This document shows positions 9,613 to 63,760 of a stretch of DNA of 64,000 bases, one piece after another; positions within the stretch are counted from its first letter, which is position 1, and each line of letters begins with the position of its first letter. The position numbers and the translations under genes are program-made. Under the pieces are notes generated by a model. That model did no database searches and was not told where the DNA came from. It saw nothing but the letters and a program-made list of their open reading frames with translations. Where the stretch lies: the sequence record PP942979.1; one strand, written 5' to 3'.

Positions 9613-9620
9613 ATTTACAG
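9613..9620 (-). promoter_or_regulatory. Replication-gene promoter motif CTGTAAA(T), representative site
   Basis: Also at 15499, 18928, 28267, 35638, 38148, 47014, 49623, 49964, 53595, 55779, 63736 (minus) and 59203 (plus, before a plus gene). Confidence 0.7.
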
Positions 9621-9962
9621 ATTTGGGCTGCGCTGCCAAACAACGAATCTGATATTCAGAGCACGATCATCACGCAAGGCTGTTTCGCGTGGGTCGTGGC
9701 GATAGGCGTATTTCTGCAAATGCTCAGGTCTTTCGTGGGGTAAGACTGCATGAGCAGGATTGGGCACAGATTCATAGGTGTGACTCTCAATCACCACCAG
9801 ATTGTCAATACGAAGAACACCAGGAACCTCGAACACAGTCGGCAGATTGCCGGGCGTAGTTGCAGTACCAAGAACTGTCTCATGATACTCCACTAATGCT
9901 TTCACTAACGCCCGCCCAACAGCAGTAGTGAGCGTCAGATTATACTCGGTTCTAAATTCCAT
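9615..9962 (-). CDS. Hypothetical protein
   Basis: 115 aa, AGGAG SD, tightly packed. Confidence 0.7.
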   Translation of the reverse strand: MEFRTEYNLTLTTAVGRALVKALVEYHETVLGTATTPGNLPTVFEVPGVLRIDNLVVIESHTYESVPNPAHAVLPHERPEHLQKYAYRHDPRETALRDDRALNIRFVVWQRSPNL

Positions 9963-9977
9963 GGTGTTCTCCTATTA

Positions 9978-10349
9978 TTACATCAGTGGCATTTCTGGAT
10001 CGACGTAGGTGTACAAGAACACCACGTTCCAACCAGAGGCAGCTTCAGGGTTGTTGTGGAAGCGATATCCATAGAACATCAGGATGCCCGTACTACCTTC
10101 ACCCAGTGTTGGGTCATAGATAGTGAACGCTTCTTCCAACTTGAGCGCGTCAGCAATGCTGATAGCCCAGTTATCCAAATCAAACGGACCTTCTGGAACT
10201 TCCCACGAATACGAATGCTTCTGCCAGTGTTCGGCCTGCATGTCAGTATCTTTGGAAATCCAGTCGAGATGTTTAAGTCCCATGTGCAGAGCGACAGCGC
10301 GTGGAATGCCGTGCTCGTTCATGTAACGCTGCAATTGATCAAGACGCAT
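9978..10349 (-). CDS. Hypothetical protein
   Basis: 123 aa, overlaps upstream stop. Confidence 0.7.
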   Translation of the reverse strand: MRLDQLQRYMNEHGIPRAVALHMGLKHLDWISKDTDMQAEHWQKHSYSWEVPEGPFDLDNWAISIADALKLEEAFTIYDPTLGEGSTGILMFYGYRFHNNPEAASGWNVVFLYTYVDPEMPLM

Positions 10350-10662
10350 TGCATAGTTCCTTAATGGTGCGTGGGAAGACTGTCACATTAATGCGCGTGT
10401 GATCTTTGTGTTCAGGATGCGGTAGGCATTCATGAGACACAAGCCAGACGTTCGTGCATTCGAGTTTATCACGCATCACCATTAACAGGTTGGACATGAC
10501 AGACACGCTATGCACAAAGTTAGAATAATCGAGAGTGAGGACCATTACTTCACTCGTCGGTTCTTCATCGCCTTGGTTCCACAGGCTAACGTTCATCGAC
10601 AGGCGGGCTGCTTCACTTCTCAACATATCCATATCGAGAGTGTGCGGTAAACGCTCTTTCAT
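10339..10662 (-). CDS. Hypothetical protein
   Basis: 107 aa, AAGGAG SD. Confidence 0.7.
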   Translation of the reverse strand: MKERLPHTLDMDMLRSEAARLSMNVSLWNQGDEEPTSEVMVLTLDYSNFVHSVSVMSNLLMVMRDKLECTNVWLVSHECLPHPEHKDHTRINVTVFPRTIKELCNAS

Positions 10663-10700
10663 TTAAACTCCTTATAGCTTCAAAAGAGACAGTCTATAAA

Positions 10701-11186
10701 TTAGAGAGCGAGACCCTTAAGCAGTAAACGCGCACTGGTCAGGAATTGACGTTGTTTGTTTTGAGGCAGCTTGCGATAGCGCTGGAGGATATCCTCTAAC
10801 GAGGCGTCTTCGCCTGTACTCAGATGGACGCTTTCAATCGTGCCGAGTTCTCCTTTCATCCAGTTGGCTTTGGTGACAGTTAACAGGAAGGTGCCGCGAT
10901 ACTCCTCCACGATACGACCGCCAGGCCCGCCAACAGGGTTACGAACTTTGGTGTGCTCGATGTTTGCGATACGCTGAATCGCTATGCCGTCAGGGAATTG
11001 CGCAAACACCTCAGACAGATCAATATCTGCCTTGTTGTTCGGTGCAGGAGATTTAGCAACGAATGTTACACGGAACGTTTCGCCGCCTTCAACGTCGTAC
11101 TGACCATCATAGATGATCTTGTCGTTGGCGCGCAGCGTGTCAGTAATCAGTTTGAAAATCGGATCTGAGAACATGCTATTCCTCAA
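10701..11186 (-). CDS. Hypothetical protein
   Basis: 161 aa; true start may be the nearby MFSDP Met. Confidence 0.7.
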   Translation of the reverse strand: MRNSMFSDPIFKLITDTLRANDKIIYDGQYDVEGGETFRVTFVAKSPAPNNKADIDLSEVFAQFPDGIAIQRIANIEHTKVRNPVGGPGGRIVEEYRGTFLLTVTKANWMKGELGTIESVHLSTGEDASLEDILQRYRKLPQNKQRQFLTSARLLLKGLAL

Positions 11187-13840: not shown

Positions 13841-14286
13841 TAATCACCTTTGTCAGTTACGAGAATAGGACTCTCAGGAGTCTTGTGTGGCATAGCAAAG
13901 AAACTACCATGCTCGTCTCGATAAATTAGCAGACCCCCAGAAGGACCTTCGATAGGACAGGTGAAGTTGTATAGTTTTTCGAGCGGAGGCATGTAGCCTA
14001 CAGTCACTGCGTTAAACGTACACCACTTCGCGGAGACTTCAAGCAGTGAGCCAACAACAGTGTCGGCTAGGCGCAGATACGATTGCTTGAAGTGGTAGCT
14101 ATGTTCTATAGGCGCAACGCTATCAATATCCAGCGAGTCACCATACACAGCTTTATAAATCAGACAGAAACGACGACGCCCGCGCGGGGCATTAGGTATT
14201 TCATACAGAACATCATGTATGAGCGAACAAACGTCCCCAATGAGGACGTTTTTCTTAATAGCCAGTTTGGCCAGACGTGCCGTCAT
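13840..14286 (-). CDS. Hypothetical protein
   Basis: 148 aa, coupled to both neighbours. Confidence 0.65.
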   Translation of the reverse strand: MTARLAKLAIKKNVLIGDVCSLIHDVLYEIPNAPRGRRRFCLIYKAVYGDSLDIDSVAPIEHSYHFKQSYLRLADTVVGSLLEVSAKWCTFNAVTVGYMPPLEKLYNFTCPIEGPSGGLLIYRDEHGSFFAMPHKTPESPILVTDKGD

Positions 14287-15461
14287 GCTGGCAGATACCC
14301 AAAGTACAACAGCGTGTGCGTGTCGAACTTATAGTTCAGGCTGAATGCGTTCAGGCTATTGATGTTCGCACCATGGAAGCCCATGTTGTGTCGTTCTTCA
14401 CGCCCGATGTTACGCAGCAACTCACGGATGATACGCATGTCAAGCGAGGTACTAAACTCTTTCTCAACAGGCTTCGCCAGCTTCAAGCTGTCCTGCACAC
14501 TACCGCTATCGTTACCAAACTTGAGTTTGAACTCTTGCTTCTTAACTAGGAGCTTCGCGTTCGTGTTACCTTTCTTCTCAATCAACGTCGAGATGTTGGC
14601 GAACGGTGCAGACAGGTCACCCTTAATCACACAACCAATCAGCGGCTTGCCGAGCTGTGCAATCATGTTGTCCATGTAACGATAGTCTTCATCGCTTGCC
14701 TGAATCGGAGGCAGTGTCAGAACAAACGACTCCGCTTCGGCTGCGAATGAACTGCTGTCTACGTGGAACGTTACCTTCTCTTCTCCGCAGAAGCGATAAA
14801 TCAAATCGAACATTTCGCCAGTCAGACTGAAACGGAACGGCTTCACTTTCTTTTTCAGTGCAGCGCGATAGCGAGATGAAGTCCAGTGACCAGGACTGAC
14901 GAGGCTCAGGCTCTCACCGTCACAGATAACACGACACATCACGGTCTGGCCTGTGATTGTATCTTTCAACCGAGTCAGCTTAACGCCCTGAGTCATCGCG
15001 TCGATAACTTCACGCGTCATCTCATGGCCACCTTCGATATGGTGATGCAGACCCTGTTCGACCATTGGAATCTGCTCGGCCGATACCGGACGCAGTTTCA
15101 CTTCTGCTTTGTACTTGCCTTTCTGTTCGCTGATGTTCAACGTCTTACCGTCGAACTCAACGTTCAGCTCTTTACGCTTGCTGATCAGACCGGTCAACTG
15201 AATCGGGTCGATGTTCATTACCGTGTCAGCGTCGGCGGTCGCGCCGGGAACGAGATAAGCGACGAAGGTATCGGGAGTACGACCCAGAACGAACACGTCG
15301 GACTTATACGTCACCAGCAGGTGGACGTGAGTCAGCTTGTCGTCCGACTCAGAGAAACGCGTTACGCTATCAACACGTTTAAGAATATCTGACAGGAACG
15401 TACCGTTCAGCGTTAGGCTGCATTTCTTAGCGGGGTTCTTCGGCAATCGACAAGTCTTCAT
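14283..15461 (-). CDS. Sliding clamp, DnaN/beta-like
   Basis: 392 aa with three-fold alpha/beta pattern (FLSDILKRVDSV; VIDAMTQGVKL; FSTSLDMRIIRELL); next to the polymerase; DnaX in window. Confidence 0.6.
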   Translation of the reverse strand: MKTCRLPKNPAKKCSLTLNGTFLSDILKRVDSVTRFSESDDKLTHVHLLVTYKSDVFVLGRTPDTFVAYLVPGATADADTVMNIDPIQLTGLISKRKELNVEFDGKTLNISEQKGKYKAEVKLRPVSAEQIPMVEQGLHHHIEGGHEMTREVIDAMTQGVKLTRLKDTITGQTVMCRVICDGESLSLVSPGHWTSSRYRAALKKKVKPFRFSLTGEMFDLIYRFCGEEKVTFHVDSSSFAAEAESFVLTLPPIQASDEDYRYMDNMIAQLGKPLIGCVIKGDLSAPFANISTLIEKKGNTNAKLLVKKQEFKLKFGNDSGSVQDSLKLAKPVEKEFSTSLDMRIIRELLRNIGREERHNMGFHGANINSLNAFSLNYKFDTHTLLYFGYLPA

Positions 15462-15720
15462 CTCTATCCTCTAAAACAAATTGTAGTGTGCCCTGTATAT
15501 TTACAGCATTGAGGCGTTTGCCGGATGCTGCAATCAGGCCATTCAGAACGCCAACGAAGTCAGCGCTGTAACAGTCAGGTGCTATCTGGTGAACATAAAT
15601 ATCATCAGGCACGTCACCCGGGTTAAGCTGCCAAGCAGTACGCAAGGCAGCACCCATGAATGCCGGACGTTCTACCAGATGCTTGTTCAGGAATGAACAT
15701 ACATCTTCGGCCGTCATCAT
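15427..15720 (-). CDS. Hypothetical protein
   Basis: 97 aa between polymerase and clamp, overlapping both. Confidence 0.6.
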   Translation of the reverse strand: MMTAEDVCSFLNKHLVERPAFMGAALRTAWQLNPGDVPDDIYVHQIAPDCYSADFVGVLNGLIAASGKRLNAVNIQGTLQFVLEDRDEDLSIAEEPR

Positions 15721-18700
15721 TTTTTCGCAATCCCCTTAAGAGCAGATTTGAGCATAGACTTACTGAGTTTGATTTTCTTCTTAGGCGCGGCTCCCTCTGT
15801 AGATGCAGCGGCTTTCTTCGCAGCTTCTTCCGCTTTGTACTTCTCGAACGTTTTAATGTTCTTCGGAAGTTCTGCCAGCCACTCCTTGATGTTCTTCTTG
15901 TCCTTGTTGGTGAGAGGATTAACTTTGTCCATGCTACGAATTTTAATATCGTTAGCCCAAAGCTGTTTCTTCATCCAATCGGACATGAGATGATACTGGT
16001 CTTCCATAATGCTGTCCAGTGTCTTCTCAACATCGAGGTCTTTCTCACCCAGCTCGTCACGCTTAATCTCAAGGCCGTCTTTAATGAGCTTCCTGAGTTG
16101 AACGTAAGAGAAGTTCCAACCCTGCACGTCTTTCTCGGACGCACCGATTTCAAAGTCAATCTCAGGCACGGACGTGAACGCAAACCCTTCGTGACGCTTC
16201 TGCACAACTTCGACCACTGCGCTGGTCATCGCACGTTCGATCATATCGAGCGCAAGGAAGATCCATTTGTAATCGCAGTCAACGGTCAAGGAGTCGTGTA
16301 CAGATACGTTCATGTCAAAGTCAGGGTACTCGCCGTTCGCTTTCCAATACTCATACTTCATACGGTCCAGAATACGAATCGCGGACATCATCAGGTCAGA
16401 ACCGAAGCCCTGCACTGGACTGTTTACCGCACGACGGTCACACGCTGCATGAACCATGTTAGCTTCACGATGCGACTCGGGCAACATCAGGCCCCAGAGA
16501 TGACGACGACGACCAACCGGCGACTCAACAAAGAAGTTCTCATGAGCAAACTTCTGAATCTTATCGAACCACTTCAAGCCCACAGGGAATCGTTTAAGGA
16601 ACTTGCTTTTGATCTCTTCAATCTCACCGACTTCACGTCCTGTGGACTTCGCAAGCCCTTTATTGCCCTGCTGATAGATCAGGCCGAAGATTACGGTCTT
16701 AACCGCGTTACGTACGGACTTGGTTACGTCCATTACGTTTGGAATGCCGAAGAAGTAAGCGGCGTTGATTTTGTGAACGTCACCCTCTGCTTCGACGCGG
16801 TGCTCAATCCATGGATCAGGTACTGTACGGAAACGATGACGCAGCTTACGGCCTTGCTCAAATACGTCTGCAACGCCCTGGTCACCTGAGATGATTGACC
16901 AACCACGAACTTCGTGCGCTGAGTAGTCGACCTTGATAAGCAGGCGATTCTTACGCGCAATCAGAATACGTTTGATCAACTTACCCATCTCACTACGAGA
17001 CGGTACCTGCTGCAAGTTCGGGTCAGACGCTGAGGTACGACCCGTTACAACTCCAAGATAACCATAAGTCGGTCTGATTGAACGGTCATGTTTGAAGTCT
17101 TCTGATTCACCCCAGAGCTTGAGCAGGCTGTTAACGTAGGCGTTCTTGAGCTTGTACGCTTTACCAAGTTTGGTGTAGAGAGACACAAGCGGTATATCAG
17201 CATACGCTGCCTGGAAGTCCTTGTCGAGCTTGCCCGCCTTCTTGCCGTTCTCACGTAACTGTTCCCCTTCTTTCAGAGGCTTGAGCTTCATCACATCGAA
17301 GAACAGAATCTGTTTGTGTTCCGACTTCGACATATCGAACTTGGTCACTTCGACTTTGCCCATAAGACCCATCTTAGGAACATTGTCGTCTTTGCAAATA
17401 ACCTTGTTCGCAGCCTTAACCTCAGGGCTGTTCATGAACTCACGCTCTACGTTTCGAATTTCTTCGTTGATAGGGCTGTTCGGTAGGTTGAGCTTAAACA
17501 GGTAATCAATGTCTGCGCCTGCACCTGTCGTTTCAAGAATCGAGAACGCATGAATCTGGTCGGAGATTTGCTCACTGACCATCGACTCATACTTCTTGTA
17601 TTTAATATCGTTGGCTCGCTTTTGCTGTTGCTCTGCAATACGGAACGGAACGATAACGTCGAGACCCGCATACTCCTGCACCGATTCGTCGAGGTCAACG
17701 TCTGCGATTGTCGCTCGCATCTCTTTACCGAACGACACTTCGTGGTACACCTGACAACCAAACTGCATCGTCAGGTTAGCCAAGTTATAATAACCGCTAC
17801 CGGTAACGTTCAACAACGACTTGGCGTTTTCATCGAACGCAAACTCACCCGCCTGAATATCCCAAACGTTTGCTGCATAACTACGAATGCCGAAGTTAGA
17901 GCGCATTACGTTCAGATCGAACTTCGCGTTGGTGTAGATTTGATACTTGTTATCGTTGTCCTCGAAATAATCTTTGAACAACTCACTTACCCTACGCAGT
18001 TCTTTCGGACTGAATGGACTGTCACGGTGATAGATAGGAACAACATACGCCTTCTGACCGTCAGATGATAACTGCACCGTCAAGATTTTATTCTTAATAC
18101 GATTCAGGTTCTCTGTTTCGGTATCGACTGCAACCTTCTTGGCGCGCTTCATACGCTTCAAGATTTTCTCAAGTTGCTTGACCTTCGTTACATACACGAG
18201 GTCCCAGTTACGCTTCTTACCACACGTAACTTCATCGATCTTATAGCGCATCCCCTTGTTAAGCCACGGCAACATCCAGCGAGCCATGTAGCCTAACGTA
18301 TACGATGAACCTTTGATGTGCATCGGGTTCAACACGGTGTGATAGCTGACGTTCGGCACATGGATAAAGCTGTGCTTCTTACCGTCGTACTTCACCTTCG
18401 TTGGAATCTCAACACCGTACCAGTGCTCGTAGTGATCTTTCGAGAACTGTATTTTCTCGCTGTTCAGTGCTTTGAACGGCGCTTTGCCGAAAGTCAGAAC
18501 ATAGTCTGGCTTGTACTCAACAATCAAATCACGAATACGATCCGCAAACGCTTGGTCTGCGTCTTCTTTGAACTGCTCGCCCTTGTCATACGTCTTGAAC
18601 ATGTTGTACGAGACAACAAGGAAGTTCCAGTCGTCAAGAGTTGTCTTGGTCGGAAACGTATCTTCAAGATACTGCATCTGATTCAGGAACAACTCACCTT

Positions 18701-18887
18701 CCGTACTACTGAATATTTTGCCGCTACGCAAATCTTCGGTAGGCATATGGTCTAGGACGAGAAGTGCTTTACCACCTTTGGCACTTTTACTTATGTGTTT
18801 TAGTATTCGAACACCGTCATACGTCTGCTGGTCAGCAAACTGTTCAGGTGGATCGAAGTCAAGAGCTACGTGCTTGATTTTCACCAT
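15717..18887 (-). CDS. polA: Family-A DNA polymerase: UDG-like domain, 3'-5' exonuclease, polymerase
   Basis: VAVDTET, NAKFD, YAGLD; TGRTSASDPNLQQVP; motif A DYSAHEVR, motif B RNAVKTVIFGLIY, motif C VHDS. Confidence 0.93.
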   Translation of the reverse strand: MVKIKHVALDFDPPEQFADQQTYDGVRILKHISKSAKGGKALLVLDHMPTEDLRSGKIFSSTEGELFLNQMQYLEDTFPTKTTLDDWNFLVVSYNMFKTYDKGEQFKEDADQAFADRIRDLIVEYKPDYVLTFGKAPFKALNSEKIQFSKDHYEHWYGVEIPTKVKYDGKKHSFIHVPNVSYHTVLNPMHIKGSSYTLGYMARWMLPWLNKGMRYKIDEVTCGKKRNWDLVYVTKVKQLEKILKRMKRAKKVAVDTETENLNRIKNKILTVQLSSDGQKAYVVPIYHRDSPFSPKELRRVSELFKDYFEDNDNKYQIYTNAKFDLNVMRSNFGIRSYAANVWDIQAGEFAFDENAKSLLNVTGSGYYNLANLTMQFGCQVYHEVSFGKEMRATIADVDLDESVQEYAGLDVIVPFRIAEQQQKRANDIKYKKYESMVSEQISDQIHAFSILETTGAGADIDYLFKLNLPNSPINEEIRNVEREFMNSPEVKAANKVICKDDNVPKMGLMGKVEVTKFDMSKSEHKQILFFDVMKLKPLKEGEQLRENGKKAGKLDKDFQAAYADIPLVSLYTKLGKAYKLKNAYVNSLLKLWGESEDFKHDRSIRPTYGYLGVVTGRTSASDPNLQQVPSRSEMGKLIKRILIARKNRLLIKVDYSAHEVRGWSIISGDQGVADVFEQGRKLRHRFRTVPDPWIEHRVEAEGDVHKINAAYFFGIPNVMDVTKSVRNAVKTVIFGLIYQQGNKGLAKSTGREVGEIEEIKSKFLKRFPVGLKWFDKIQKFAHENFFVESPVGRRRHLWGLMLPESHREANMVHAACDRRAVNSPVQGFGSDLMMSAIRILDRMKYEYWKANGEYPDFDMNVSVHDSLTVDCDYKWIFLALDMIERAMTSAVVEVVQKRHEGFAFTSVPEIDFEIGASEKDVQGWNFSYVQLRKLIKDGLEIKRDELGEKDLDVEKTLDSIMEDQYHLMSDWMKKQLWANDIKIRSMDKVNPLTNKDKKNIKEWLAELPKNIKTFEKYKAEEAAKKAAASTEGAAPKKKIKLSKSMLKSALKGIAKK

Positions 18888-18945
18888 CTAGTCCTATCAG
18901 AGTGTGTAACGCAAATCGATGGCTGTTATTTACAGATTTAGAAAT

Positions 18946-18973
18946 GAAAAAGGGCACCCGAAGGCACCCTTTT
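18946..18973 (-). terminator. Intrinsic terminator, tandem-wobble family
   Basis: AGGGTGCC-TTCG-GGTGCCCT then TTTTCATTTC. Confidence 0.85.
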
Positions 18974-18982
18974 GGTTAAATA

Positions 18983-28243: not shown

Positions 28244-28276
28244 GATGATCTCCTAAATACAGTTCTATTTACAGAC

Positions 28277-29101
28277 TTAGGCGCTCGCGCTAAATATCTG
28301 AACTGTCTTCGATAGACCCGCCTGATAGGCTTGCTCAATATCTTTCGCAGCGTTACGAATGATCGTTTGCGTCTGATTCTGCGCACCAGCAATCATTTCA
28401 ACAGGCAGATTCTTTTTATTCCATGCGTTAATCTGGTGGAATACGCCAACCAGAATTGTACCAGCAGACTCAGCGAAAGGTCCCATGACTTCTTCGTTGA
28501 GAATCTCTGCCAGTTGCGACACGTCACGCAGCGCACGAAGGTCAGCGATAATCTCACGCATCTGGTTATAGAGTTGCATCAGTGCGTAAATATCACGGCT
28601 CTGTTTGGATTTCGTATACTGCTCCTCACACAGTCGCGCCATTGACTGACACTGCTTGAACATCGTCATGTACTCGGCAATCTGGTCGTTCTCTTGTTTG
28701 ATAACGTCAGGCACATCTGCCATAACCTCAAGGAACTGACCTTCCAGAGCAACCATATCGGTGCTCAAACTCCGTGACTCTTTTTTCTTCTTTTTCTTTT
28801 TGATGGTATCTACTGCATTCTCTTTCTTTTTCTTAGCTTTCTTTGGCTTTGGTTCATCCAGAGACTGCATTGCCTTTTGAGATGCTGCAATATCCGAATA
28901 GAAGTCATCGGGATCAATGTGTTTGGGCAGCACGTCTTTCGAAGGGTCGGACTTATTTTTCTTCTTGACCTTAACGCCTTTGCTAACTGTCTTAGCTTTC
29001 TTGACGGTGGTCTTAGCTTTAACTTTCGCTTTACTCTTTTTCGCAGATGCTTTTGCAGGCTGGGCGAAAGAGCCAATGTCATCCAAGCTTATGGCCGCCA
29101 T
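28277..29101 (-). CDS. Hypothetical protein, Lys-rich N-half and helical C-half
   Basis: 274 aa; function not recognisable. Confidence 0.65.
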   Translation of the reverse strand: MAAISLDDIGSFAQPAKASAKKSKAKVKAKTTVKKAKTVSKGVKVKKKNKSDPSKDVLPKHIDPDDFYSDIAASQKAMQSLDEPKPKKAKKKKENAVDTIKKKKKKKESRSLSTDMVALEGQFLEVMADVPDVIKQENDQIAEYMTMFKQCQSMARLCEEQYTKSKQSRDIYALMQLYNQMREIIADLRALRDVSQLAEILNEEVMGPFAESAGTILVGVFHQINAWNKKNLPVEMIAGAQNQTQTIIRNAAKDIEQAYQAGLSKTVQIFSASA

Positions 29102-29967: not shown

Positions 29968-30009
29968 CTCCTGAATGTTTCGACAATATGAAATTAGTAA
30001 ACTTAGGGT

Positions 30010-33570: not shown

Positions 33571-33676
33571 CCTCTACTGGGTCTAGTAATCATATCGAAT
33601 AAAAATTAGCGACTCAGGCGTGTTTTGTCCGATATAGTGTTCGCACTGACTTTACAAATTTTGGTCGCTATAAACG

Positions 33677-35607: not shown

Positions 35608-35655
35608 CAATACAATCCACGAGTTTCTTTGACTGCTATTTACAGAATCAAAATG

Positions 35656-37572: not shown

Positions 37573-37630
37573 TGGGGATCTCTGTGTTCGGGTGATGATA
37601 AAAATTAGCGTAGAAACGACAAACGCCCCT

Positions 37631-38140: not shown

Positions 38141-38179
38141 ACAGAGTATTTACAGAAGCACGTCCGTGTGCCGATACAA

Positions 38180-41890: not shown

Positions 41891-41925
41891 AATAAAGCCC
41901 TCTGTTAGACAGACTAAAATTAGCG

Positions 41926-42768: not shown

Positions 42769-42835
42769 AGTTTCTACCTCAGGTAGGTTGATTACAAGGT
42801 ACTGCGCGTTGAGGTAAAATTAGTTCCAAGATCGA

Positions 42836-46976: not shown

Positions 46977-47038
46977 AGTTGTATGCCCAGGTTTGGTATG
47001 AAAGATACTGCTTATTTACAGTTTCTAGGCGTATAGAT

Positions 47039-47523: not shown

Positions 47524-47538
47524 AACGGCTCCAGAAAT

Positions 47539-48191: not shown

Positions 48192-48258
48192 TTATTGTCT
48201 TCCAGAGCTGTATGATTAATTGTAGTTAAAATTATCGTTCAGTCAGACATTTCTGAAA

Positions 48259-48292: not shown

Positions 48293-48301
48293 ACTTATTT
48301 A

Positions 48302-49585: not shown

Positions 49586-49649
49586 TTTACTTCGCCCTTT
49601 ATTTTGATGCGTTACACCAGTAATTTACAGATTTTAGACAAAAAGAAAG

Positions 49650-49678
49650 GACCACATCTCAAAGTGAGAGGGTCCTTA
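49650..49678 (-). terminator. Intrinsic terminator
   Basis: AAGGACC...GGTCCTT then TCTTTTT. Confidence 0.65.
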
Positions 49679-49724
49679 TTTATAATGTGTTGGATGATAA
49701 CACATCGGCAGTGGGCGCTGACGA

Positions 49725-49922: not shown

Positions 49923-50015
49923 CTATTCTCCTGTGTAAAAATTTTCTCGTTCTTCTGAATTATGTTTACAGTTTACTGCGAGTAGTCACACAAGGATAAA
50001 GTCAGACAAATCTTA

Positions 50016-50344
50016 AACTCCAATAGGCTCTCAATCAAGAACATATTGGAGTCCACCCTCGCCAGATGACGGTCTAGCCAGGGCTTTCTCCCCGTGTCTT
50101 TCAATTGCACCGACACGGTAGCGCTCGCGGTCTTACGCTCTCTGTGGCTTGCGAACATATCGGCAGGTAGCAGGGTTCGCAGCCTAGAGCAGCCGCTTTC
50201 GGCCATTAGCGATAACGCGGTGTTACGCTAGTTGGCCTGACTCTGTGGCCGAGTCTGTACAAAAAAGAGTTCGGCCTATCCCCAAATTCGGCAAAAGAAA
50301 CAGGCCGAACTAAACAGTCAGCGCAAACTCCATATGCACTGTTT
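50016..50344 (-). ncRNA. Candidate structured non-coding RNA, family not recognised
   Basis: Eight consecutive stem domains cover the gap; G.U pairs favour minus strand; CTAATTT promoter motif at 50356-50362. Confidence 0.65.
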
Positions 50345-50390
50345 TGTACTGTTACAAATTAGAAACATCCTGCAATAAATCAGACAATTC

Positions 50391-53370: not shown

Positions 53371-53565
53371 TCAGTTCTCAGGAGTAGGTTTGGACGAGCT
53401 TTGGGTATAACTGAAACCATAGCCCACCATTTTATTTTGCTGCCGCTTTGCTCGCTGCTTGCGTTGGATCTCGGCGTCACGTTTGTCCAGCTCGTCAAAG
53501 ATACCTACGCGACGAGCATAGCGAAACTTCGGATGTACGGAGATATGTTTGACGATAGCTGTCAT
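53371..53565 (-). CDS. Small basic protein
   Basis: 64 aa, GAGGA SD, CTGTAAAC upstream. Confidence 0.65.
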   Translation of the reverse strand: MTAIVKHISVHPKFRYARRVGIFDELDKRDAEIQRKQRAKRQQNKMVGYGFSYTQSSSKPTPEN

Positions 53566-53604
53566 GCGTTATTCCTCTATGTTGATTGCTGTTAGTTTAC
53601 AGTA

Positions 53605-54129
53605 TCAATCACTCTTGCCCATTTGACGTTCGAGCACGTAAGCCAGATAGTCATCCCACGTAGCGAAACCATCTTTGGCCAACATACGGTCAAACTCGCG
53701 GTCAGACTTAGATCCCTTAGGAAAGCGAATCTTGTTTGACAGACGCTGGAGTCGGTCGTACATAAACCGAGACTGCTTAACAATCGGATTCTTCTCAGGT
53801 AAATGATTCTGCAACAATTTGTAGCTGAACACCAGAGGGAAGTCTTTGTTAGGCACCGTAACACCCAACAGCCTATGTACCGTGTTTAGGTACTGCTCGA
53901 TTTGAGCATGACATTCTGGGTGAGCATAGTACCAGTCGTCCAGTGAGGCCAAGCCATGAGTTTCCTCATAAACCATTGCGTCATACATGACCATGAGAAT
54001 CGGCTTCTCTTCCTTCTTTTCTTTGTACGCCTGAAACAAAACTGGGCAAGTCCCATATTTGTTTTGCAGCATCGTTTCCAAGATTGCTGCGAAGCGTACA
54101 ACTTCATATTCGGTAAGTACCTTACTCAT
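53605..54129 (-). CDS. Hypothetical protein
   Basis: 174 aa, GGAG SD. Confidence 0.7.
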   Translation of the reverse strand: MSKVLTEYEVVRFAAILETMLQNKYGTCPVLFQAYKEKKEEKPILMVMYDAMVYEETHGLASLDDWYYAHPECHAQIEQYLNTVHRLLGVTVPNKDFPLVFSYKLLQNHLPEKNPIVKQSRFMYDRLQRLSNKIRFPKGSKSDREFDRMLAKDGFATWDDYLAYVLERQMGKSD

Positions 54130-54132
54130 ACT

Positions 54133-55749
54133 TCACTCCGAGAATATCTTTTTGTCAGAAAACTTCTTGAGCACAAACTCGGCACAATCGCTCGTCACGC
54201 TGTCTCCATCAACGCAGAGTAGCGCACCGTCATGCTCAAGGGAATACACACCCTTGACGTTCGGACAATTAAGAATAGCATCGAACAAATACAAACTCTC
54301 CCAGCCAGACAGCATGTGGTTGAGAATGCGTTTGTCAATCTTCTTGCCTGTGTCGTCAGGATCAGGATCGTAGTTAGATCCTGTCGGGCACTGGAGTACC
54401 CCATACTCGGGTCTTCGTGCATTTTTATTCTTGCGGAACTTAGACCGATACACGTTAAGCAATTCTTTGATCGCAAGATACAGAGGAGTCATCCTCGTGT
54501 TCCAGTCTAAGATTTCCTCTTTCACTCTCGAAGCTGGTACGAAGCGAGCTAACTCTTTATAGACGTTGCTGTACTTCGTTGGTTCAAGTTGACCTGCCGA
54601 AAAAATTGTACCATACAAACAAACCTTGGCTGCGCGTCTGTCAAGTTTCATAATGCGGCTAATGTCGTCAACAGAACTAATCTGGTCGAACATCGCACAC
54701 GCAATACCGTAAGCGTCAAACTCCCTACGCAACACGTTGAACTGGCTGGACTTCATATCCCAGTTAGTGCCAATCGTGTAGCACTGCTCCTTCAAGTCCG
54801 AAGGTAAGTTCTGGAACCCACCACCGACCTCGAACAATCGCCCGCCAATCTGAGACAGCCTATACTTCGGCCAGTAGCGAACGACAAGAGGTTTCTCGCT
54901 AACGATCTGAACAGGACCCGACACTATGGTATCGAGTAACGTTTTCACCTGCAGGTATTGCTTCTTCGCCTTGTGATTAGCAATCAACGATTTGTCTTCT
55001 AAATAAGCAAGTATAGGGTCGATGTTCACTTCATTAGGCATCAGCTTATCAAGTACCTGTCGATAAAGAGCACGGCCACTAAGCACCTTAGAGTTTCCTC
55101 TGTCTCGGTTGCGATCAAGTGAACTAAGATCATGCGCAGGGCGCTTGAACGGTAGCTTAGAATTTTTCTGAATCTGTGACCACACCGTCACACCATAATC
55201 CTCCCTTAAAATTTTAAGAGGACTATAGAAACGAATGCGGTACAAAATATCGTAATGCGACTGCGGCTTAAAGTGCCCGTACATCCCGTCTAAGATTTCA
55301 GGACGCATCCTAAACTCTCGACTAAGGCCCTTTTCTTTGCTGTAAGGCTTCGTTTCAAATACGTTAGCCATCAACCACTCAAGGGACCTACCGTACGTGC
55401 CTTTTTTAGACTTGGCATATCGCCCGACAGCAACATTATCGCCACCACGCTTGTGACCGAAGACCATTGGCAGTTTTTCTTTTCCTAACGAGCTTGGAAA
55501 CGGCACCCAGACCCGTCCAAACTTCTTTTTCTTGTGTTTACGTGCAGGATAAAGACTGCATTGAAGAATGTGCCAGAAGAATAAGTTCAATTGAGCACGA
55601 AACGCAGATCGCTCGCTCTCGGGGCCGTCGTAGGGACAGGCATCAAGAACATGTTTTCGCACCCACAAAACAACTTCCTTCTCCTGGTAAGAGGGGTTCG
55701 TGATTAATACTGGCCCCTGACCGGAAACGATTCGTTTTTTCATGTTCAC
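54133..55749 (-). CDS. Divergent family-A-like polymerase without exonuclease (TV-Pol-like)
   Basis: GGRLF...FQNLP, motif A DMKSSQ, motif B RRAAKVCLYG, NHMLSG, motif C EHDG. Confidence 0.7.
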   Translation of the reverse strand: MNMKKRIVSGQGPVLITNPSYQEKEVVLWVRKHVLDACPYDGPESERSAFRAQLNLFFWHILQCSLYPARKHKKKKFGRVWVPFPSSLGKEKLPMVFGHKRGGDNVAVGRYAKSKKGTYGRSLEWLMANVFETKPYSKEKGLSREFRMRPEILDGMYGHFKPQSHYDILYRIRFYSPLKILREDYGVTVWSQIQKNSKLPFKRPAHDLSSLDRNRDRGNSKVLSGRALYRQVLDKLMPNEVNIDPILAYLEDKSLIANHKAKKQYLQVKTLLDTIVSGPVQIVSEKPLVVRYWPKYRLSQIGGRLFEVGGGFQNLPSDLKEQCYTIGTNWDMKSSQFNVLRREFDAYGIACAMFDQISSVDDISRIMKLDRRAAKVCLYGTIFSAGQLEPTKYSNVYKELARFVPASRVKEEILDWNTRMTPLYLAIKELLNVYRSKFRKNKNARRPEYGVLQCPTGSNYDPDPDDTGKKIDKRILNHMLSGWESLYLFDAILNCPNVKGVYSLEHDGALLCVDGDSVTSDCAEFVLKKFSDKKIFSE

Positions 55750-55789
55750 ATCATGATTACCTGATTTTTCTATCGTTTCTTTACAGTTT

Positions 55790-56400
55790 CAGACAACTCT
55801 TAACCCGAAAGCTACTACAGCGCTAATGCTAGGAAGGCTAAGGCTACAGCAGGCTTGCTACAACGCTCATGGCATGCTTCAACAATAGTTCTACAGGTAC
55901 ATCTTTAGGCGGCACGTTTCAGAGACATAGAAAATAAAGAAACCATGTCCTCAGCAGCCCGAACTATAGTCCATACGCACTATAGGTAGCGATCTAGCGG
56001 AAATCCCTAGGTCGTCTAAACCGTGTAAATTTTCCGTCAAAAACAGTCCGTTTTTTAACCAAACGCCCTTTTTGACTCTGAAAATGAGGAAAATCCGAGA
56101 AAAATCAAGGACTTTCTCCTCTTTTCTACCTCGGTGAAACTCAAATTGCATCATCAGGTTGAGTATTTGAGATATCGGCATGTACATGCAGCTTCATCGC
56201 ACTATAGTCACGCGGAATTAGCGCCTCAGTCCCAAAACCCTCGCGCTAGGAGCTATAACCCTGACGTAGAACCGTGTGCTGAGGGCCCAAAACATCAAAC
56301 CGTCAATAGACTGGTTATTTGGTACCAATACAGAGGATTCTTAATCCTCACACGTAGACGTCAAAAGGAGATGCTCCTAGCGCGATTCCATAGGAAACTG
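55790..56400. other. Origin-like non-coding region
   Basis: ~600 bp with no credible gene; GCTA/CTACAG/ACTATAG repeats, phased A/T tracts, palindromes, 13-bp inverted repeat. Confidence 0.5.
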
Positions 56401-56401
56401 G

Positions 56402-57061
56402 TTACTTTTTGCGCGATACTTGTTTTCCGAGTTTTACGCCGATCTGCGTCATAATACGCTTAACGGTCTCTCCATCGTGCTCTTCCATAGCGTTTGCGAG
56501 CCTTTCGCCCTGTTCGCGCGATAGCTCAGGCATAACCATTTTAAGCATCTGCGAACGCAGTTTTGCGCTCTTGGATTTGCCTTTCGAGACAGACACGCCT
56601 TCATTCGCCTTAAGCGCACTGCTAATCGCTTTCTGAACACGACGATCACCAAAAATGTCGCCGAATATGTCACCGAACAGGTCCTTGAACGACAATCCGC
56701 CGCCCATAATGTCGTCTTTCGTGAAACGAACAGGTACACCCAGCGCATTCACTTTATTGCAATGCACCGATTCGACCTGATTCGTTGTACGTCCACCAGC
56801 ACGGAAGTTCTCGTCAGGGCGTGACGCTTTGCCCTCTGCACCGGGCTTAGTGTTGCCGTTGCGCAAATCTGGATCGCCTTCAACCTGTTTGTTTTGATCA
56901 AACATATCGTCGGCAGTTTCGCTTTGATTTGGGTCGAACGGGATCTTACCTGTCAGCTTGTTTGCGTCTGGCCAGCTATCAGGAATATCAGACGCAGGCT
57001 GTGCCTTGTTCGTCATATCACCGTTTGCTTCACCACTCAAACTGATCTTAATACGAGTCAT
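56402..57061 (-). CDS. Hypothetical protein with MTRIKISLSG N-terminus
   Basis: 219 aa, GGAG SD, late operon. Confidence 0.7.
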   Translation of the reverse strand: MTRIKISLSGEANGDMTNKAQPASDIPDSWPDANKLTGKIPFDPNQSETADDMFDQNKQVEGDPDLRNGNTKPGAEGKASRPDENFRAGGRTTNQVESVHCNKVNALGVPVRFTKDDIMGGGLSFKDLFGDIFGDIFGDRRVQKAISSALKANEGVSVSKGKSKSAKLRSQMLKMVMPELSREQGERLANAMEEHDGETVKRIMTQIGVKLGKQVSRKK

Positions 57062-57070: not shown

Positions 57071-58180
57071 CTATCGAATTTTATAGCCTTTGAAAATGTT
57101 ATACGCAATCTCTTTGCGCTGTACGGGACGAGTGACGCACACCCATTCCCACTGATCGTTTTTCGCTGTGCGTTTCTTCGGTGCTTCCATAACTTTCAGC
57201 ACGTAGTTTTTGAAAGGCAGAACGAGAATGTCTTCCGGCTCAATCGCGCCGCTGCGAGCAGGCAGAACTACCGTGATGTTGCCGACAGTCAGTTCCTGAT
57301 CGTAGTTGAGCACGTTTGCTTCTTCGCTGATGTTGCCTTTAACAGGCGGAACACCTAAGTCAAAGATCATGGTGCAGTGTGTGAATGCCTCAATGCCTTT
57401 GACGCGAATCGTTACATGCTTGCCTCGCCAGCGCTCCAGATTCTCTGCTGTCAGATCGACTTCAACACCGTTCACCAGCAGCATAGGACGTGGGAAAGCA
57501 GGAAGCAGAGTTTCATTCAGACGTACCGAATAAGTCGCCTGCGTAAAGTATTTTGGAATAAGCTGATCAAAATCAGCGTAGCCGTCTTTACGTACCTGCC
57601 TGAATGTTGCAGGGCTGGTGGACTGATCAAGAGTATAGCCAGTCAGCTCTTTAATATGATGATGCGTAGCGATATTGTAGATGAAGCCAGTGCTGATAAA
57701 GCCTGGCACAACACCCTGACGGAAACAGATACCGCAGTTCGCAACGTTGCCGCCGTCCCATTTAACGTCGAACTCCTCACCTGAGTCTACGCCCATGATA
57801 TCGGCTGCGTCCATAACGGCGTTCATGCCATCATCAATATCGTCGAGGGTTACTGCTTGACGTCCACCGCCAAACATGCCCTTGCCTACGGTATCGATCT
57901 TAACGCCGCCTGACATTGAATCAGATTCTCGGCCAAGGCTTTTCATGCCTGCCGGAATATTGTCCATAATGTCGTTCTCAACCTTGTTGCAACTACAGGT
58001 GAGACCCATCTTCGCTTTCTTGAAGATGACAATATCGGTGGCGTCAACCGCAAGCGCCTGTTCGACTTTGGATTGCACGACCTTCTGAATACTGTCGAGG
58101 CGTTGCTGGACACGTTCAGTTTCGTAGGTCTTGTGCCTGTCATAGGTATTTCGTGGTCTCCCACGTTCAATCCAGCTCAT
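57071..58180 (-). CDS. Putative head-closure/neck protein with Zn motif
   Basis: CSC...CGICFRQG..PGF and EDILVLP; TAATTT promoter. Confidence 0.55.
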   Translation of the reverse strand: MSWIERGRPRNTYDRHKTYETERVQQRLDSIQKVVQSKVEQALAVDATDIVIFKKAKMGLTCSCNKVENDIMDNIPAGMKSLGRESDSMSGGVKIDTVGKGMFGGGRQAVTLDDIDDGMNAVMDAADIMGVDSGEEFDVKWDGGNVANCGICFRQGVVPGFISTGFIYNIATHHHIKELTGYTLDQSTSPATFRQVRKDGYADFDQLIPKYFTQATYSVRLNETLLPAFPRPMLLVNGVEVDLTAENLERWRGKHVTIRVKGIEAFTHCTMIFDLGVPPVKGNISEEANVLNYDQELTVGNITVVLPARSGAIEPEDILVLPFKNYVLKVMEAPKKRTAKNDQWEWVCVTRPVQRKEIAYNIFKGYKIR

Positions 58181-58279
58181 AAAAGTTCTCCTCTGTGTGC
58201 TTGAAATTAGTGACTAAGAATTTAGGACCTTCTGCCTAGCAAATACTTATTTATAGCATGTTAAATCACGGAGCCTAAC

Positions 58280-58835: not shown

Positions 58836-59201
58836 ATGGAACACGAACAACTGCTCGCTCTCGTTAAAGATGTAGTGTCTGAATTTGGCACTCCTGTATA
58901 CCTCGATCGTGGTCAGGTTGGCGAGAACAGCCGCACGTATGCCACTATCGAAACTCTGATCAACGTTCAGTCCGACGCACAAGGCACGACGCTGCTGCAA
59001 GATCTGAAAGCGAAGATCGCAGAGTATGTTGAACTGCTGCGTACCGAAGGCACGACGCGCTCTATTGACGGAGCCGTTCAGCGCCTGGAACCTGTTACTC
59101 AGGGTCAGAAGTTTACCTACCGCGACCCAATGGTAAACGAAATTCCCAACGGTGTGCTGTACTCTGTCTCCATTGGTTTTCCCATGTTTGTGGCCAATTA
59201 A
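58836..59201 (+). CDS. Hypothetical protein
   Basis: Start moved to ATG 58836 (GAGGA SD). Confidence 0.65.
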   Translation: MEHEQLLALVKDVVSEFGTPVYLDRGQVGENSRTYATIETLINVQSDAQGTTLLQDLKAKIAEYVELLRTEGTTRSIDGAVQRLEPVTQGQKFTYRDPMVNEIPNGVLYSVSIGFPMFVAN

Positions 59202-59247
59202 TCTGTAAATATCCTTACTTGGTTAACATGGCTCGTGGGATATAGAA

Positions 59248-59940
59248 ATGGCGAAGTTGAAGAAAGAACAAAAGACAGTTGTGGCTAAAAAACCTGCGAA
59301 GGTCAAGCAGTCCAAAGCCGTCAAAACAAATAAAGGAAAAGCAGTAGCTATTCATGTTGTTCAGGACACGCGTCCGATTGTGCATTGCCCTGAAATGGAA
59401 GACAAGCCTCAACCGTTTCGTTTTCGTGGCCAGTGCCCGATCACAACATGTCAGTATTGCACCCGCGAAACGCCTAACGGCTGCATGGCGCTTGACCGCA
59501 AAGAAGCCGCCGACCGTTCAATCTCTAACAGGGAGATCGCTTATTACAAACGTGGCCTCTTCCCAGAACTCAAAGAGATGGATCAAAAGCAGTTGGACAA
59601 TACGATTCGACGCGCACAAAATCGTACCCGTACTGCTATCTGTCTTACTATGTTTATTGCCGGGATTGATGATAGTGATTGCGATAGGTCTTTTCAGTAT
59701 GTAGAAGGCCGCAGTCGCATTGTCGATCAGGTTCATAACTATCTGGTGCAAACGTTCAATGACTACCGTCCGTGGATGCTGGCGTATCTCGACGACGAAG
59801 AACGTTTCTCTCAGATGGTAGGCAAGATAACCAATTCTGACTTTAATTTAGGTATGGCACTGCGGTTAACGCCTCGTAAGTATCAGACGTTCTGCCAGTC
59901 GCTGCAAAACCTTAAACAATCTGGAGACTCAAATGAGTGA
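59248..59940 (+). CDS. Cys-cluster protein with Lys-rich N-tail, putative regulator
   Basis: CP...CPITTCQYC...C then SNREIAYY helix; CTGTAAAT at 59203. Confidence 0.6.
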   Translation: MAKLKKEQKTVVAKKPAKVKQSKAVKTNKGKAVAIHVVQDTRPIVHCPEMEDKPQPFRFRGQCPITTCQYCTRETPNGCMALDRKEAADRSISNREIAYYKRGLFPELKEMDQKQLDNTIRRAQNRTRTAICLTMFIAGIDDSDCDRSFQYVEGRSRIVDQVHNYLVQTFNDYRPWMLAYLDDEERFSQMVGKITNSDFNLGMALRLTPRKYQTFCQSLQNLKQSGDSNE

Positions 59941-61702: not shown

Positions 61703-61754
61703 TCCTTTTACAGGGGCTTCGGCCCCTAATAGAAATGAAATTCGGAGATTTACA

Positions 61755-62408
61755 ATGAGCAAGCAAAAGACTACCGTACAGCCGATTACTCTCGCAACCT
61801 ATAACGAGCGCTACGGCAAAGACACAGTTGCACCGATGTATGTCGCTAACCGTACCGAGCCGCGTGGCAACGTAATGTTCAGCGCGAAAGACGATCTCGG
61901 CCAGCCAGTGCCTGTACTCGTACCTGCAACTTTCATCCCGATCGATCTGACCCAGCAGGCTACTAAAGACAGCCTGTTGCAGTCTACTCACCTGCGTCGC
62001 GCCCTGACTATGGGCCAGCTGGTTATCATCGACACCAAGAGCGCCGAAGAGTATCTGCGTAACAGCAAGATCGCTCAGACCGAGATGCGTAATCTGAATA
62101 AGATGAACGCGTCTATCGCTGCTGACCTGGGCGAAGAAACTGGCGAACTGGCTGCAATCGATCTGGGCGGCGGTAGCAAGAAGAAAGAGATCCTGTTCGA
62201 AGACGGTGATCAGTATTCTTCTAACCAGTTCGTTAACGCATTCATCATGCGAGCGCAAGAAGACAGCGGCGAGTCCGACGACAATCTGGAACGTGAATTC
62301 CTGTCTCGCGGTCTCGGCCTGCCTGTGTCTGAGCTGAACATTCTGCGCGAGCATATCACTCGTCCGGCAATCGTTGAGCTGATCGTTCAGGCGCTTGACG
62401 ACGCGTAA
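61755..62408 (+). CDS. Head-associated protein candidate
   Basis: NRTEPRG...VPAT..PIDLTQQA shared with N-domain of 59933..61702. Confidence 0.6.
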   Translation: MSKQKTTVQPITLATYNERYGKDTVAPMYVANRTEPRGNVMFSAKDDLGQPVPVLVPATFIPIDLTQQATKDSLLQSTHLRRALTMGQLVIIDTKSAEEYLRNSKIAQTEMRNLNKMNASIAADLGEETGELAAIDLGGGSKKKEILFEDGDQYSSNQFVNAFIMRAQEDSGESDDNLEREFLSRGLGLPVSELNILREHITRPAIVELIVQALDDA

Positions 62409-62423
62409 TCCAAAGCTACAAAC

Positions 62424-62464
62424 AAAAAAAAATGGGAGGCCCCGAAAGGAGTCTCCCATTTTTA
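62424..62464. terminator. Bidirectional terminator between convergent genes
   Basis: A-run, AATGGGAGGC...GTCTCCCATT, T-run. Confidence 0.85.
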
Positions 62465-62635
62465 TTACTGCTGCTGTTCTCTCATGCGATCAAGAAACGC
62501 TTTACCTGCGCCTGGCACAAGCACTCGCGGCTCGAAAGGAATCTTATTGATTCTGCGCTGCATGTTACGGCGAAAGCGTTCACGTAGTGCCTGAACGGTG
62601 TGTTGCTTAAACTGTGATCTGAATTTCAAAGCCAT
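62465..62635 (-). CDS. 56-aa basic protein (not in ORF track)
   Basis: MALKFRSQFKQHTVQALRERFRRNMQRR...; starts 1 nt after primase stop. Confidence 0.6.
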   Translation of the reverse strand: MALKFRSQFKQHTVQALRERFRRNMQRRINKIPFEPRVLVPGAGKAFLDRMREQQQ

Positions 62636-62636
62636 T

Positions 62637-63695
62637 CTACTTTCCTTTCTTCTCTATTGCCTTTGGTCTATTCCACCCAAGTTCTTTCGCAGGCATGATG
62701 CACTTCTTACCGTGAATATCACGCAGCGTCATACGAACTTCTTTGATCAACTTGAATGGTGCGTTGTCGGGGTCGAGCTTAATCAGCTTGCCGTCTTCAT
62801 CAAACTCACGAGGTAGTTTAAAGTGCTTGACCGGTACTGGTGAGTTACGTTCAAATTCATCTTTGATCTTTGTGCGCAACAACTTCCCACCACCATCGTT
62901 ATCTGTCATCGTATAGACAACACTCACGCCAAGCATTTCAATCGTTCTGCGTTTCGTTTCACCAAACTGCTCTGCACCGAGAACAGCCAGCGCTGGTATT
63001 CCGTATGACAGGAGAGCCAGAGCATCTCGCGGACCTTCGACAAGAACGATGTAGCGCAACTTGTACTTCTTCAAACACTCTTTGACCAGAGGCAGTGGGA
63101 ACAGGCCTTTGTCTTTTGCCCAATCGCCTTGCGAGTTCACATAGCTGGTGCCGTTCATTTGCTTACGCAGATAAGCTGCAATCCCACCTATGTATTTCGT
63201 TCCATGCTTACACGGAAAGAAACAAACGTTTGTGCCTGTATGCTGCGCATTAAGCAGACCACCAGCAGCACGAACAAGCGCACCCGGATATCCACGCCAC
63301 TCAACATCAAGCGGCCACTCCATGTATGACTTACGTCCGAGTGCTTTCATCAATAGACCGACAGACGGATAGGTACCAATCTTCGAGCCAATCTGATCAT
63401 ACGTTTTAAGCAAGGCACTGAGCGAGTTCGTTCCTGCGTCTTTTAACGCCCAGCCTTTGATCTCTTGCAGTCGAGCGTGAGCCGCTAATTTATTCCAGCC
63501 GCCTTTCTCGCCACAGCCGAAGCAGTGAAAGAATCCGAGTGGTATCTCCATGCCTACAGAAGTGTAAATACCACAACTAGGAGTCTTATCACTGTGGAAC
63601 GGACAGCACACCATAACAGTGTCGCCGTTATATTTCTTCTCGCCCGGCAGTTTACCTATTTCGTCAAGAATTATCTGATGAACGTCTTCTGCCAT
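62637..63695 (-). CDS. dnaG: DnaG-type primase
   Basis: CPFH...CFGC zinc-binding domain; TOPRIM VEGPRD and TDND. Confidence 0.88.
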   Translation of the reverse strand: MAEDVHQIILDEIGKLPGEKKYNGDTVMVCCPFHSDKTPSCGIYTSVGMEIPLGFFHCFGCGEKGGWNKLAAHARLQEIKGWALKDAGTNSLSALLKTYDQIGSKIGTYPSVGLLMKALGRKSYMEWPLDVEWRGYPGALVRAAGGLLNAQHTGTNVCFFPCKHGTKYIGGIAAYLRKQMNGTSYVNSQGDWAKDKGLFPLPLVKECLKKYKLRYIVLVEGPRDALALLSYGIPALAVLGAEQFGETKRRTIEMLGVSVVYTMTDNDGGGKLLRTKIKDEFERNSPVPVKHFKLPREFDEDGKLIKLDPDNAPFKLIKEVRMTLRDIHGKKCIMPAKELGWNRPKAIEKKGK

Positions 63696-63760
63696 ACCAT
63701 CCTCTGTCTATTTCGTAATTTACGCATATAAGCATATTTACAGATATAGGGATAACTAGA

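Follow-up and report, generated by a model that had tools for sequence, protein, structure and literature searches.

A CTGTAAA box before replication genes of Erwinia phage phB78, a probable phage-specific promoter, and its candidate sigma-like readers

What kind of signal is a short, oriented word that recurs before the replication genes of a large phage, and which protein could read it? The question is raised by a stretch of 64,000 nucleotides, called the window here, which corresponds letter for letter (100% match) to bases 124001-188000 of Erwinia phage phB78 (PP942979.1, 261,824 bp, genus Alexandravirus). Statements on the whole phB78 genome are based on this public record, and translations follow genetic code table 11. 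An earlier note on the window had listed thirteen CTGTAAA(T) sites, located by the plus-strand start of the 8-mer or by that of the 7-mer plus one base. In the following, M1 designates the box A-A-W-CTGTAAA-T-A with the core CTGTAAATA, and M2 the TAATTT box with the full form GCTAATTT. From the motif, its orientation, position, targets and conservation, promoter function, start site, timing and reader protein were inferred. It appears highly probable that the middle or replication genes of phB78 have a phage-specific promoter that consists of a single element with CTGTAAATA as its core, likely read by the host core polymerase together with a phage sigma-family protein.

All thirteen sites exist. 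When words upstream of phB78 genes were counted without bias, two signals emerged beyond ribosome sites and terminators, CTGTAAAT and (G)CTAATTT. The window contains 16 copies of CTGTAAA, 15 on the minus strand and one on the plus strand, where 8.4 are expected, and this number is reached in 2 of 100 shuffles. For CTGTAAAT, 11 copies are present versus 2.0 +/- 1.45 expected, and none of 100 shuffles reaches 11. Three 7-mer matches had not been listed before. Those at 6599-6605 and 20331-20337 are located within coding sequence, and the one at 61707-61713, the sole anti-oriented match of the window, adjoins a terminator hairpin.

The genes of phB78 are arranged in blocks, on the plus strand from 1 to 42.9 kb, on the minus strand from 42.9 to 182.2 kb, then in a short plus block, with the primase on the minus strand and all genes from 187.8 kb to the end on the plus strand. 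The motif follows these orientations, as had been noticed in the window: genome-wide, 61 of 62 CTGTAAA words are co-oriented with the local genes. A similar frequency in antisense orientation, which the earlier note regarded as decisive against the motif, was not seen; the opposite was found, with sense to antisense ratios of 34:0 for CTGTAAAT and 26:0 for CTGTAAATA. A scan of the genome with the M1 matrix, at a threshold of at least 11 bits, yielded 52 co-oriented and no anti-oriented matches. More than half of the CTGTAAA words of the genome (39/62) are found no more than 130 nt upstream of a co-oriented start, where 8% are expected (p 3e-27). The remaining strongly strand-biased words of the genome are all purine-rich coding words. 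On the strength of strand counts and shuffles, chance or codon bias was rejected as the source of the M1 signal. Since the motif contains an in-frame stop and its reverse complement none, codon usage would bias the counts in the opposite way.

The logo derived for M1 shows conserved A-A-W 5' of the CTGTAAA core and T-A 3' of it. There is no information in the logo anywhere from -45 to -5 that would indicate a -35 element. Position +15, counted from the C of M1, is a purine in 33 of the 39 upstream sites and an A in 24; with TAAATA taken as the hexamer from -12 to -7, this is exactly the expected +1. The thirteen listed sites are located 15-49 nt upstream of a co-oriented start codon, with site 9620 as a possible exception (34 nt to a GTG or 73 nt to the annotated ATG). 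The closest start codons are found at +15, +26, +27 and +31 from the C. M1 should therefore be a -10-like element itself, and a function as -35 or activator element was rejected on the same grounds. TAAATA would act as the -10-like hexamer, with transcription starting at the purine 7 nt downstream and no -35 element taking part. Many M1 boxes directly follow a terminator hairpin, and the M1 sequence is not palindromic.

At window position 38155, the A of an ATG is itself at +15, and this spacing is kept in three relatives despite differing spacer bases. Judged from this arrangement, the mRNA starting at this box is probably leaderless. The open reading frame (ORF) concerned (37631-38140, minus strand, 169 aa) is unannotated in the phB78 record and shows weak SLOG/DprA-like Pfam matches. 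The record of Dickeya phage AD1 annotates its counterpart as 'putative ssDNA binding protein'.

Which genes are preceded by M1? In the window (Table 1), Pfam and PHROG matches confirm a position before replication genes, as originally suggested, for DNA polymerase A, the sliding clamp, the clamp loader, the SbcD-like nuclease (phosphoesterase) and the DnaG-type primase. The gene 8966-9547, which had been taken for a second polymerase, has no Pfam match. The SLOG/DprA-like ORF, an HNH endonuclease gene and some small genes are further targets in the window. Outside it, M1 is found before the genes for NAD ligase, SSB, MazG, Dam methylase, ParB and the sigma-like protein SHZ78_230, and before the operon holding the gene of a second sigma-like protein, SHZ78_321. 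This gene set is a typical middle class. M1 would thus drive DNA replication, recombination and nucleotide metabolism as well as the phage's own sigma-like genes.

Table 1. M1 and M2 boxes in the window (window coordinates)
Box	Position	Strand	Downstream gene(s)	Distance to gene (nt)	Remarks
M1	9612..9623	-	SHZ78_156 (8966-9547), then 155, 154, DHH phosphoesterase		22.2 bits
M1	15498..15509	-	sliding clamp (14283-15461; phrog_947 DNA polymerase processivity factor)	45	
M1	18927..18938	-	DNA polymerase A (15717-18887; Pfam DNA_pol_A, 3'-5' exonuclease)	48	terminator hairpin just upstream
M1	28266..28277	-	HNH endonuclease (27878-28243) and downstream genes	31	kept in AD1, SNUABM_1, SNUABM_3
M1	35637..35648	-	SbcD-like nuclease (34534-35607)	38	box fixed, upstream flank rearranged in relatives
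M1	38147..38158	-	SLOG/DprA-like ORF (37631-38140)		ATG at +15, the predicted start site
M1	47013..47024	-	small genes 196, 195 and 776-aa exonuclease (44234-46564)	45	terminator upstream
M1 (CTGTAAATT)	49622..49633	-	clamp loader (48302-49585; Pfam DNA_pol3_delta2, AAA)	45	
M1, weaker variant (CTGTAAACA)	49963..49974	-	small gene 49725-49922	49	13.5 bits
M1, weak variant (CTGTAAACT)	53594..53605	-	small gene 53371-53565	37	<11 bits
M1, variant (CTGTAAAGA)	55778..55789	-	538-aa ORF 54133-55749	37 (to GTG)	14.5 bits
M1	59200..59211	+	gene 59248-59940 (+)	45	sole plus-strand M1 box of the window
M1	63735..63746	-	DnaG-type primase (62637-63695; Pfam Zn_ribbon_DnaG, Toprim)	48	
M2	4304..4309	-	gene 3634-4272		
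M2	6753..6758	-	tail sheath (5050-6726; phrog_23)	32	terminator upstream
M2 (CTAATTT)	10698..10704	-	gene 10339-10662		
M2	29991..29997	-	gene 29161-29961		
M2 (GCTAATTT)	33603..33609	-	32281-33564, 31175-32281, head-tail connector		
M2 (GCTAATTT)	37602..37608	-	gene 35686-37572		terminator upstream
M2 (GCTAATTT)	41917..41923	-	endolysin (41318-41890)		
M2	42817..42823	-	gene 41926-42768		terminator upstream
M2	48229..48234	-	gene 47655-48191		
M2	58204..58210	-	57071-58180 and 56402-57061		

The second signal, M2, was analyzed in the same genome. CTAATTT is located upstream of genes in 17 of 20 cases. The M2 logo reads a-c-G-C-TAATTT-n-A, with a G at hexamer+7 and gene starts 29-49 nt downstream, and no -35 conservation was seen upstream of M2 in the logo. 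A purine at hexamer+7 is common to M1 and M2. Genes behind M2 comprise both tail sheath genes, virion proteins, the PAAR protein, the endolysin and the portal region. In phB78, M1 precedes 37 genes and M2 precedes 29, and no gene is preceded by the two together, so that the mutual exclusion of TAATTT and CTGTAAA(T) stated earlier holds for the genome. The idea of two regulons interleaved gene by gene is likewise borne out, since units of the two kinds alternate along the minus strand of the window, often with terminators between them.

Terminator hairpins with the shared tail TTTT(C)ATTTCTA are located directly upstream of many M1 and M2 boxes (for example 18940-18975, 35650-35680, 47025-47060 and 49635-49670), and most genes of the window should therefore form short insulated units. 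In the compact 65-nt divergent region 63696-63760, the minus-strand M1 box of the primase nearly overlaps with a plus-strand TAATTT word located 45 nt ahead of gene 63761; this stretch is almost invariant in three relatives.

A third class of promoters was found outside the window by reading intergenic regions without M1 or M2. About ten of them, all on the plus strand, are scattered over the region from 208 to 257 kb, in the midst of small genes without known function (genome positions 208130, 212942, 218641, 225971, 229393, 234416, 238391, 240776, 253191 and 257273). They consist of a box GCAAATAACTGG(A/T)CAAAAT, a spacer of about 23 nt and an extended -10 element, TGnTA(T/C)A(A/C)T. By their layout, these are probably early promoters of host sigma-70. 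The upstream box is too distant for a -35 element, and it could be an UP element or a regulator site. A strict scan of phB78 for TTGACA-N17-TATAAT missed this class; its matches were not enriched, with 15 in random orientation and 14 found vs 20 expected. Taken together, early genes would be transcribed from host-type extended -10 promoters at 208-257 kb, middle genes from M1, and late genes from GCTAATTT before virion and lysis genes.

How far is M1 conserved? It is fixed at orthologous places in AD1 and in Erwinia phages SNUABM_1 and SNUABM_3, with the clearest footprints at 35645, 38155 and 47021, positions at which the flanking DNA of these phages is divergent or rearranged. The variant at 53594..53605 is not present in SNUABM_3 and is the least certain of the thirteen sites. 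For the ORF 54133-55749 behind another variant, the phB78 record annotates 54133-55467 only, and SNUABM_1 annotates the full length, to the GTG.

M1 is not a new motif. The GenBank record of Pseudomonas phage Lu11 (JQ768459) already annotates the same box in 16-nt features designated 'putative middle/late promoter'. The three Lu11 features examined (L011 976-991, 1054-1069 and 7196-7211) each begin with CTGTAAAT(A/G) and are preceded by AAAA, and such features sit before genes, including the gene following the sigma homologue. Lu11 and phB78 thus share the core CTGTAAAT, the AAAA 5' of it, the position before genes and a co-occurring divergent sigma family, whereas the Lu11 sigma homologue is 36% identical to that of phB78 and the host is another one. 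No experimental promoter mapping was found for phB78 or Lu11, and literature searches with the motif string matched only primers and unrelated papers.

Occurrences of CTGTAAAT were compared with those of a reversed control word, giving 48 vs 6 in Lu11, 39 vs 7 in JA29, 14 vs 3 in Vibrio phage GR7B, 18 vs 4 in Xanthomonas phage PhiXhv-12, 10 vs 1 in Pseudomonas phage Peetri and 3 vs 1 in PaBG. In the whole genomes of GR7B and PhiXhv-12, the sigmas of which are about 26% identical, TGTAAAT(A) is the top upstream word. Among 56 distinct uncultivated jumbo-phage contigs carrying the sigma homologue, 39 have TGTAAA about 30 nt or less after its gene; over all 112 flanks, 5 copies of the reverse complement were counted. 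(G)CTAATTT was also detected upstream of genes in PaBG, PhiXhv-12 and Lu11; the TAATTT sites before the tail sheath and ATPase genes of Lu11 have no annotation in its record.

Several observations weigh against M1 as a promoter read in this way, or limit what the comparisons can say. Public runs with the phage offered contigs only and yielded no information on transcripts; two metatranscriptome runs gave no match, and two wastewater 'RNA-Seq' runs look like DNA. Some 7-mer sites are intragenic (genome 57280, 93811, 144337 and 246342) and could be due to chance or be internal promoters. Gene starts outside the window were partly taken from a simple gene caller. The close relatives are 82-98% identical, so that the footprint partly reflects simple relatedness, and PaBG has a shifted variant, GAAACTGT(G/A/C)AA. 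A phage RNA polymerase is not among the annotations, but no search aimed at RNA polymerase families was made and a very divergent one is possible. With no recognizable phage RNA polymerase, M1 is most likely read by the host core polymerase with a phage-encoded sigma-family protein.

Which proteins come into question? A search for sigma factors, proposed in the earlier note, led to two sigma-like proteins in phB78, SHZ78_230 and SHZ78_321. A gp55-like factor, also considered there, was not detected, as neither family is similar to T4 gp55 (hhalign probability <1%). SHZ78_230 (345 aa, encoded outside the window) is annotated as sigma factor. As a single sequence it gives a weak match to Sigma70_r2 in Pfam (E 0.05), and its family profile matches regions 1.2-2.4 of RpoD with an E of 1e-6 and keeps the Y..WW melting motif. 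In an AlphaFold model with a predicted local distance difference test score (pLDDT) of 80, residues 3-232 superimpose on sigma-70 domain 2 (Z 15.8; root mean square deviation, rmsd, 3.3 A over 223 residues). Region 3 is missing, three C-terminal helices (288-341) remain unmatched and the linker is of low confidence; Pfam region 4 of sigma-70 has no match in the phB78 genome.

SHZ78_321 (379 aa) is an ortholog of PaBG gp112, a possible second sigma factor according to the PaBG authors, whose paper names a sigma gene and this possible second one, without a promoter motif (PMC7412058). No Pfam match was obtained for SHZ78_321, and single-sequence, hidden Markov model and PDB profile searches returned noise only. 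In its model (pLDDT 81), residues 146-379 align with both domains of SigH of Mycobacterium tuberculosis (Z 10.1), and the sigma-2 domain aligns with Bartonella RpoE (Z 9.7, rmsd 2.5 A, 82 residues). Nearly all top rows of the structural matches are sigma factors, with Z values not far above the helical background. The model suggests a two-domain fold of sigma-2 and sigma-4 similar to extracytoplasmic function (ECF) sigma factors, to which an N-terminal extension of 145 residues would be added in SHZ78_321. Pfam, PDB profiles and the M1 and M2 logos did not place SHZ78_321 in an ECF sequence family with bipartite -35/-10 promoters. When the two sigma-like families were compared by hhalign, the expected regions were aligned with a probability of 6%. 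Both families and both boxes are present in all five genomes tested, and co-occurrence can therefore not pair protein and box.

It is conceivable, and tentatively favored here, that SHZ78_321 is made from a host-type early promoter and reads M1, thereby activating the replication genes, its own gene and that of SHZ78_230, which would then read GCTAATTT. The operon 319/topoisomerase/321 has an extended -10 promoter with the upstream box at genome position 257273, 60 nt after an M1 box, and no plus-strand terminator was found between this promoter and SHZ78_321. The tandem of M1 and early promoter is kept in Yoloswag, but at the corresponding position of JA29 three M1 boxes are present and a clear early promoter is lacking. 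Upstream of SHZ78_230, M1 at a distance of 41 nt is the only promoter-like word found, and a strong terminator is located further upstream. TAATTT, with its TAnnnT pattern and the G at hexamer+7, would fit SHZ78_230, in which regions 1.2 and 2 resemble those of RpoD and the melting residues Y and WW are conserved. As a lead only, TGTCAAA, the -10 element of E. coli sigma-E, resembles TGTAAAT and the PaBG variant CTGTCAA. On the other hand, a -35 element is normally required by ECF sigma factors and was not seen at M1, SHZ78_321 is without a match in Pfam, helical proteins can reach a Z of about 10 by chance, and the distribution of both families over the five genomes is uninformative. That SHZ78_230 reads M1 and amplifies its own gene, with SHZ78_321 or another factor reading GCTAATTT, is somewhat less likely. 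SHZ78_230 is the sole protein with sequence-level sigma similarity, M1 co-occurs with its family down to about 25% identity and in most relatives directly adjoins the sigma gene on one or both sides, and the TG beside a TA-rich hexamer recalls extended -10 recognition. This arrangement would, however, face a start-up problem, with the gene behind a terminator and no early promoter feeding it; TAAATA has an A at -7, where primary-type sigmas need T, and the co-occurrence is equally true of the SHZ78_321 family and of M2. The preference for SHZ78_321 as the reader of M1 is therefore a lean and not a result.

As an ordinary host sigma-70 promoter (TTGACA, 17 nt, TATAAT) M1 does not qualify, its logo holding no -35 information and its hexamer being TAAATA. 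A host sigma-70 holoenzyme modified by an early phage protein, as at T4 middle promoters, is an improbable reader, even though phB78 has many small early genes of unknown function and the start-up problem of both sigma genes would vanish: position -7 of M1 is not a T, no further -10 element follows the box and an ATG can be as near as +15, and phages of such different hosts as Erwinia, Pseudomonas, Vibrio and Xanthomonas have all retained M1. Still less probable is that M1 is no promoter at all and instead serves RNA processing, binds a repressor or a regulator of translation, or acts as a signal for replication or packaging. Such sites also occur in 5' regions, where M1 is found, but M1 often comes directly after a terminator, so that the downstream genes need a new start. 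Its spacing from hexamer to purine is the same as in M2, a non-palindromic sequence argues in the same direction, and so does the strict orientation with transcription, which was observed genome-wide and in distant phages.

With a probability clearly short of even, a conserved relay of the two sigmas may operate in a whole clade that includes Lu11, PaBG, Alexandravirus and the Vibrio and Xanthomonas relatives. There, an ECF-like sigma from an early host-type promoter would read the -35-less CTGTAAATA, activating the replication genes and the gene of a truncated RpoD-like sigma, which would read GCTAATTT before virion genes. Each of M1 and M2 would then be a lone -10-like hexamer; the two have TAA in common and would be distinguished solely at positions -9 to -7 and -15 to -13.

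Similar situations are known from other phages. The late promoter of T4, TATAAATA, is recognized by gp55 together with gp33 and the sliding clamp. Like M1 it consists of one -10-like 8-mer and has no -35 element, and TGTAAATA differs from it by one base, as had been pointed out before; the phB78 box has G at position 2. In T4 the box precedes late genes, whereas M1 precedes replication genes. TATAAATA itself occurs only five times in the phB78 genome (2+3), without strand bias, and hhalign detected no gp55 homologue in either sigma-like family. By these tests, M1 is not a late promoter of the T4 type. In Bacillus phage SPO1, a sigma cascade of gp28 followed by gp33/34 acts on bipartite promoters (-35, -10). 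The host polymerase is re-programmed there stepwise by phage sigmas with one promoter class per step, which resembles the scheme considered for phB78, but M1 and M2 are both single elements. For phage phiEco32, an ECF-like phage sigma, gp36, has been proposed to read a one-piece middle/late promoter with a conserved 9-mer around -10; the motif and the phage family are not those of phB78.

Some features of the sequences were noted in addition. In the window, 49975-50355 and 55790-56401 are without annotated gene, the former being flanked by a TAATTT word (50356-50361) and the M1 variant at 49971. Outside the window, 1.3 kb without annotated gene (genome 82465-83800) extend from a strong M1 (83797) to the GCTAATTT of the PAAR gene, and a leader of about 290 nt between the tandem M1/early promoters and gene 319 (genome 257290-257565) carries no annotated feature. 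No tRNA or Rfam families were found in the window. DNA near-identical to window positions 44001-50000 was detected in plant, phyllosphere, soil and wastewater metagenome runs of at least 12 studies, indicating that the phage or close kin are widespread.

Re-programming of the host polymerase by phage sigma factors is a textbook principle, and the M1 motif had been predicted in Lu11. What is added here is a map of three promoter classes in phB78, the geometry of a purine at hexamer+7 shared by M1 and M2, the probable leaderless case at window position 38155, the structural support for an ECF-like nature of SHZ78_321 and the putative early promoter before its operon. Compact orthogonal pairs of sigma and promoter are possible tools. 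For the 262-kb phage of the fire-blight pathogen, in which about 70% of the genes are without assigned function, M1 and M2 indicate where transcription units lie and when their genes should be expressed: a gene without known function that follows M1 probably belongs to the replication phase, and one that follows GCTAATTT probably to the virion or lysis genes. The box and the two sigma-like proteins are common to jumbo phages of Erwinia, Dickeya, Yersinia, Pseudomonas, Vibrio and Xanthomonas, and promoter specificity, once assigned in phB78, would extend to the whole clade.

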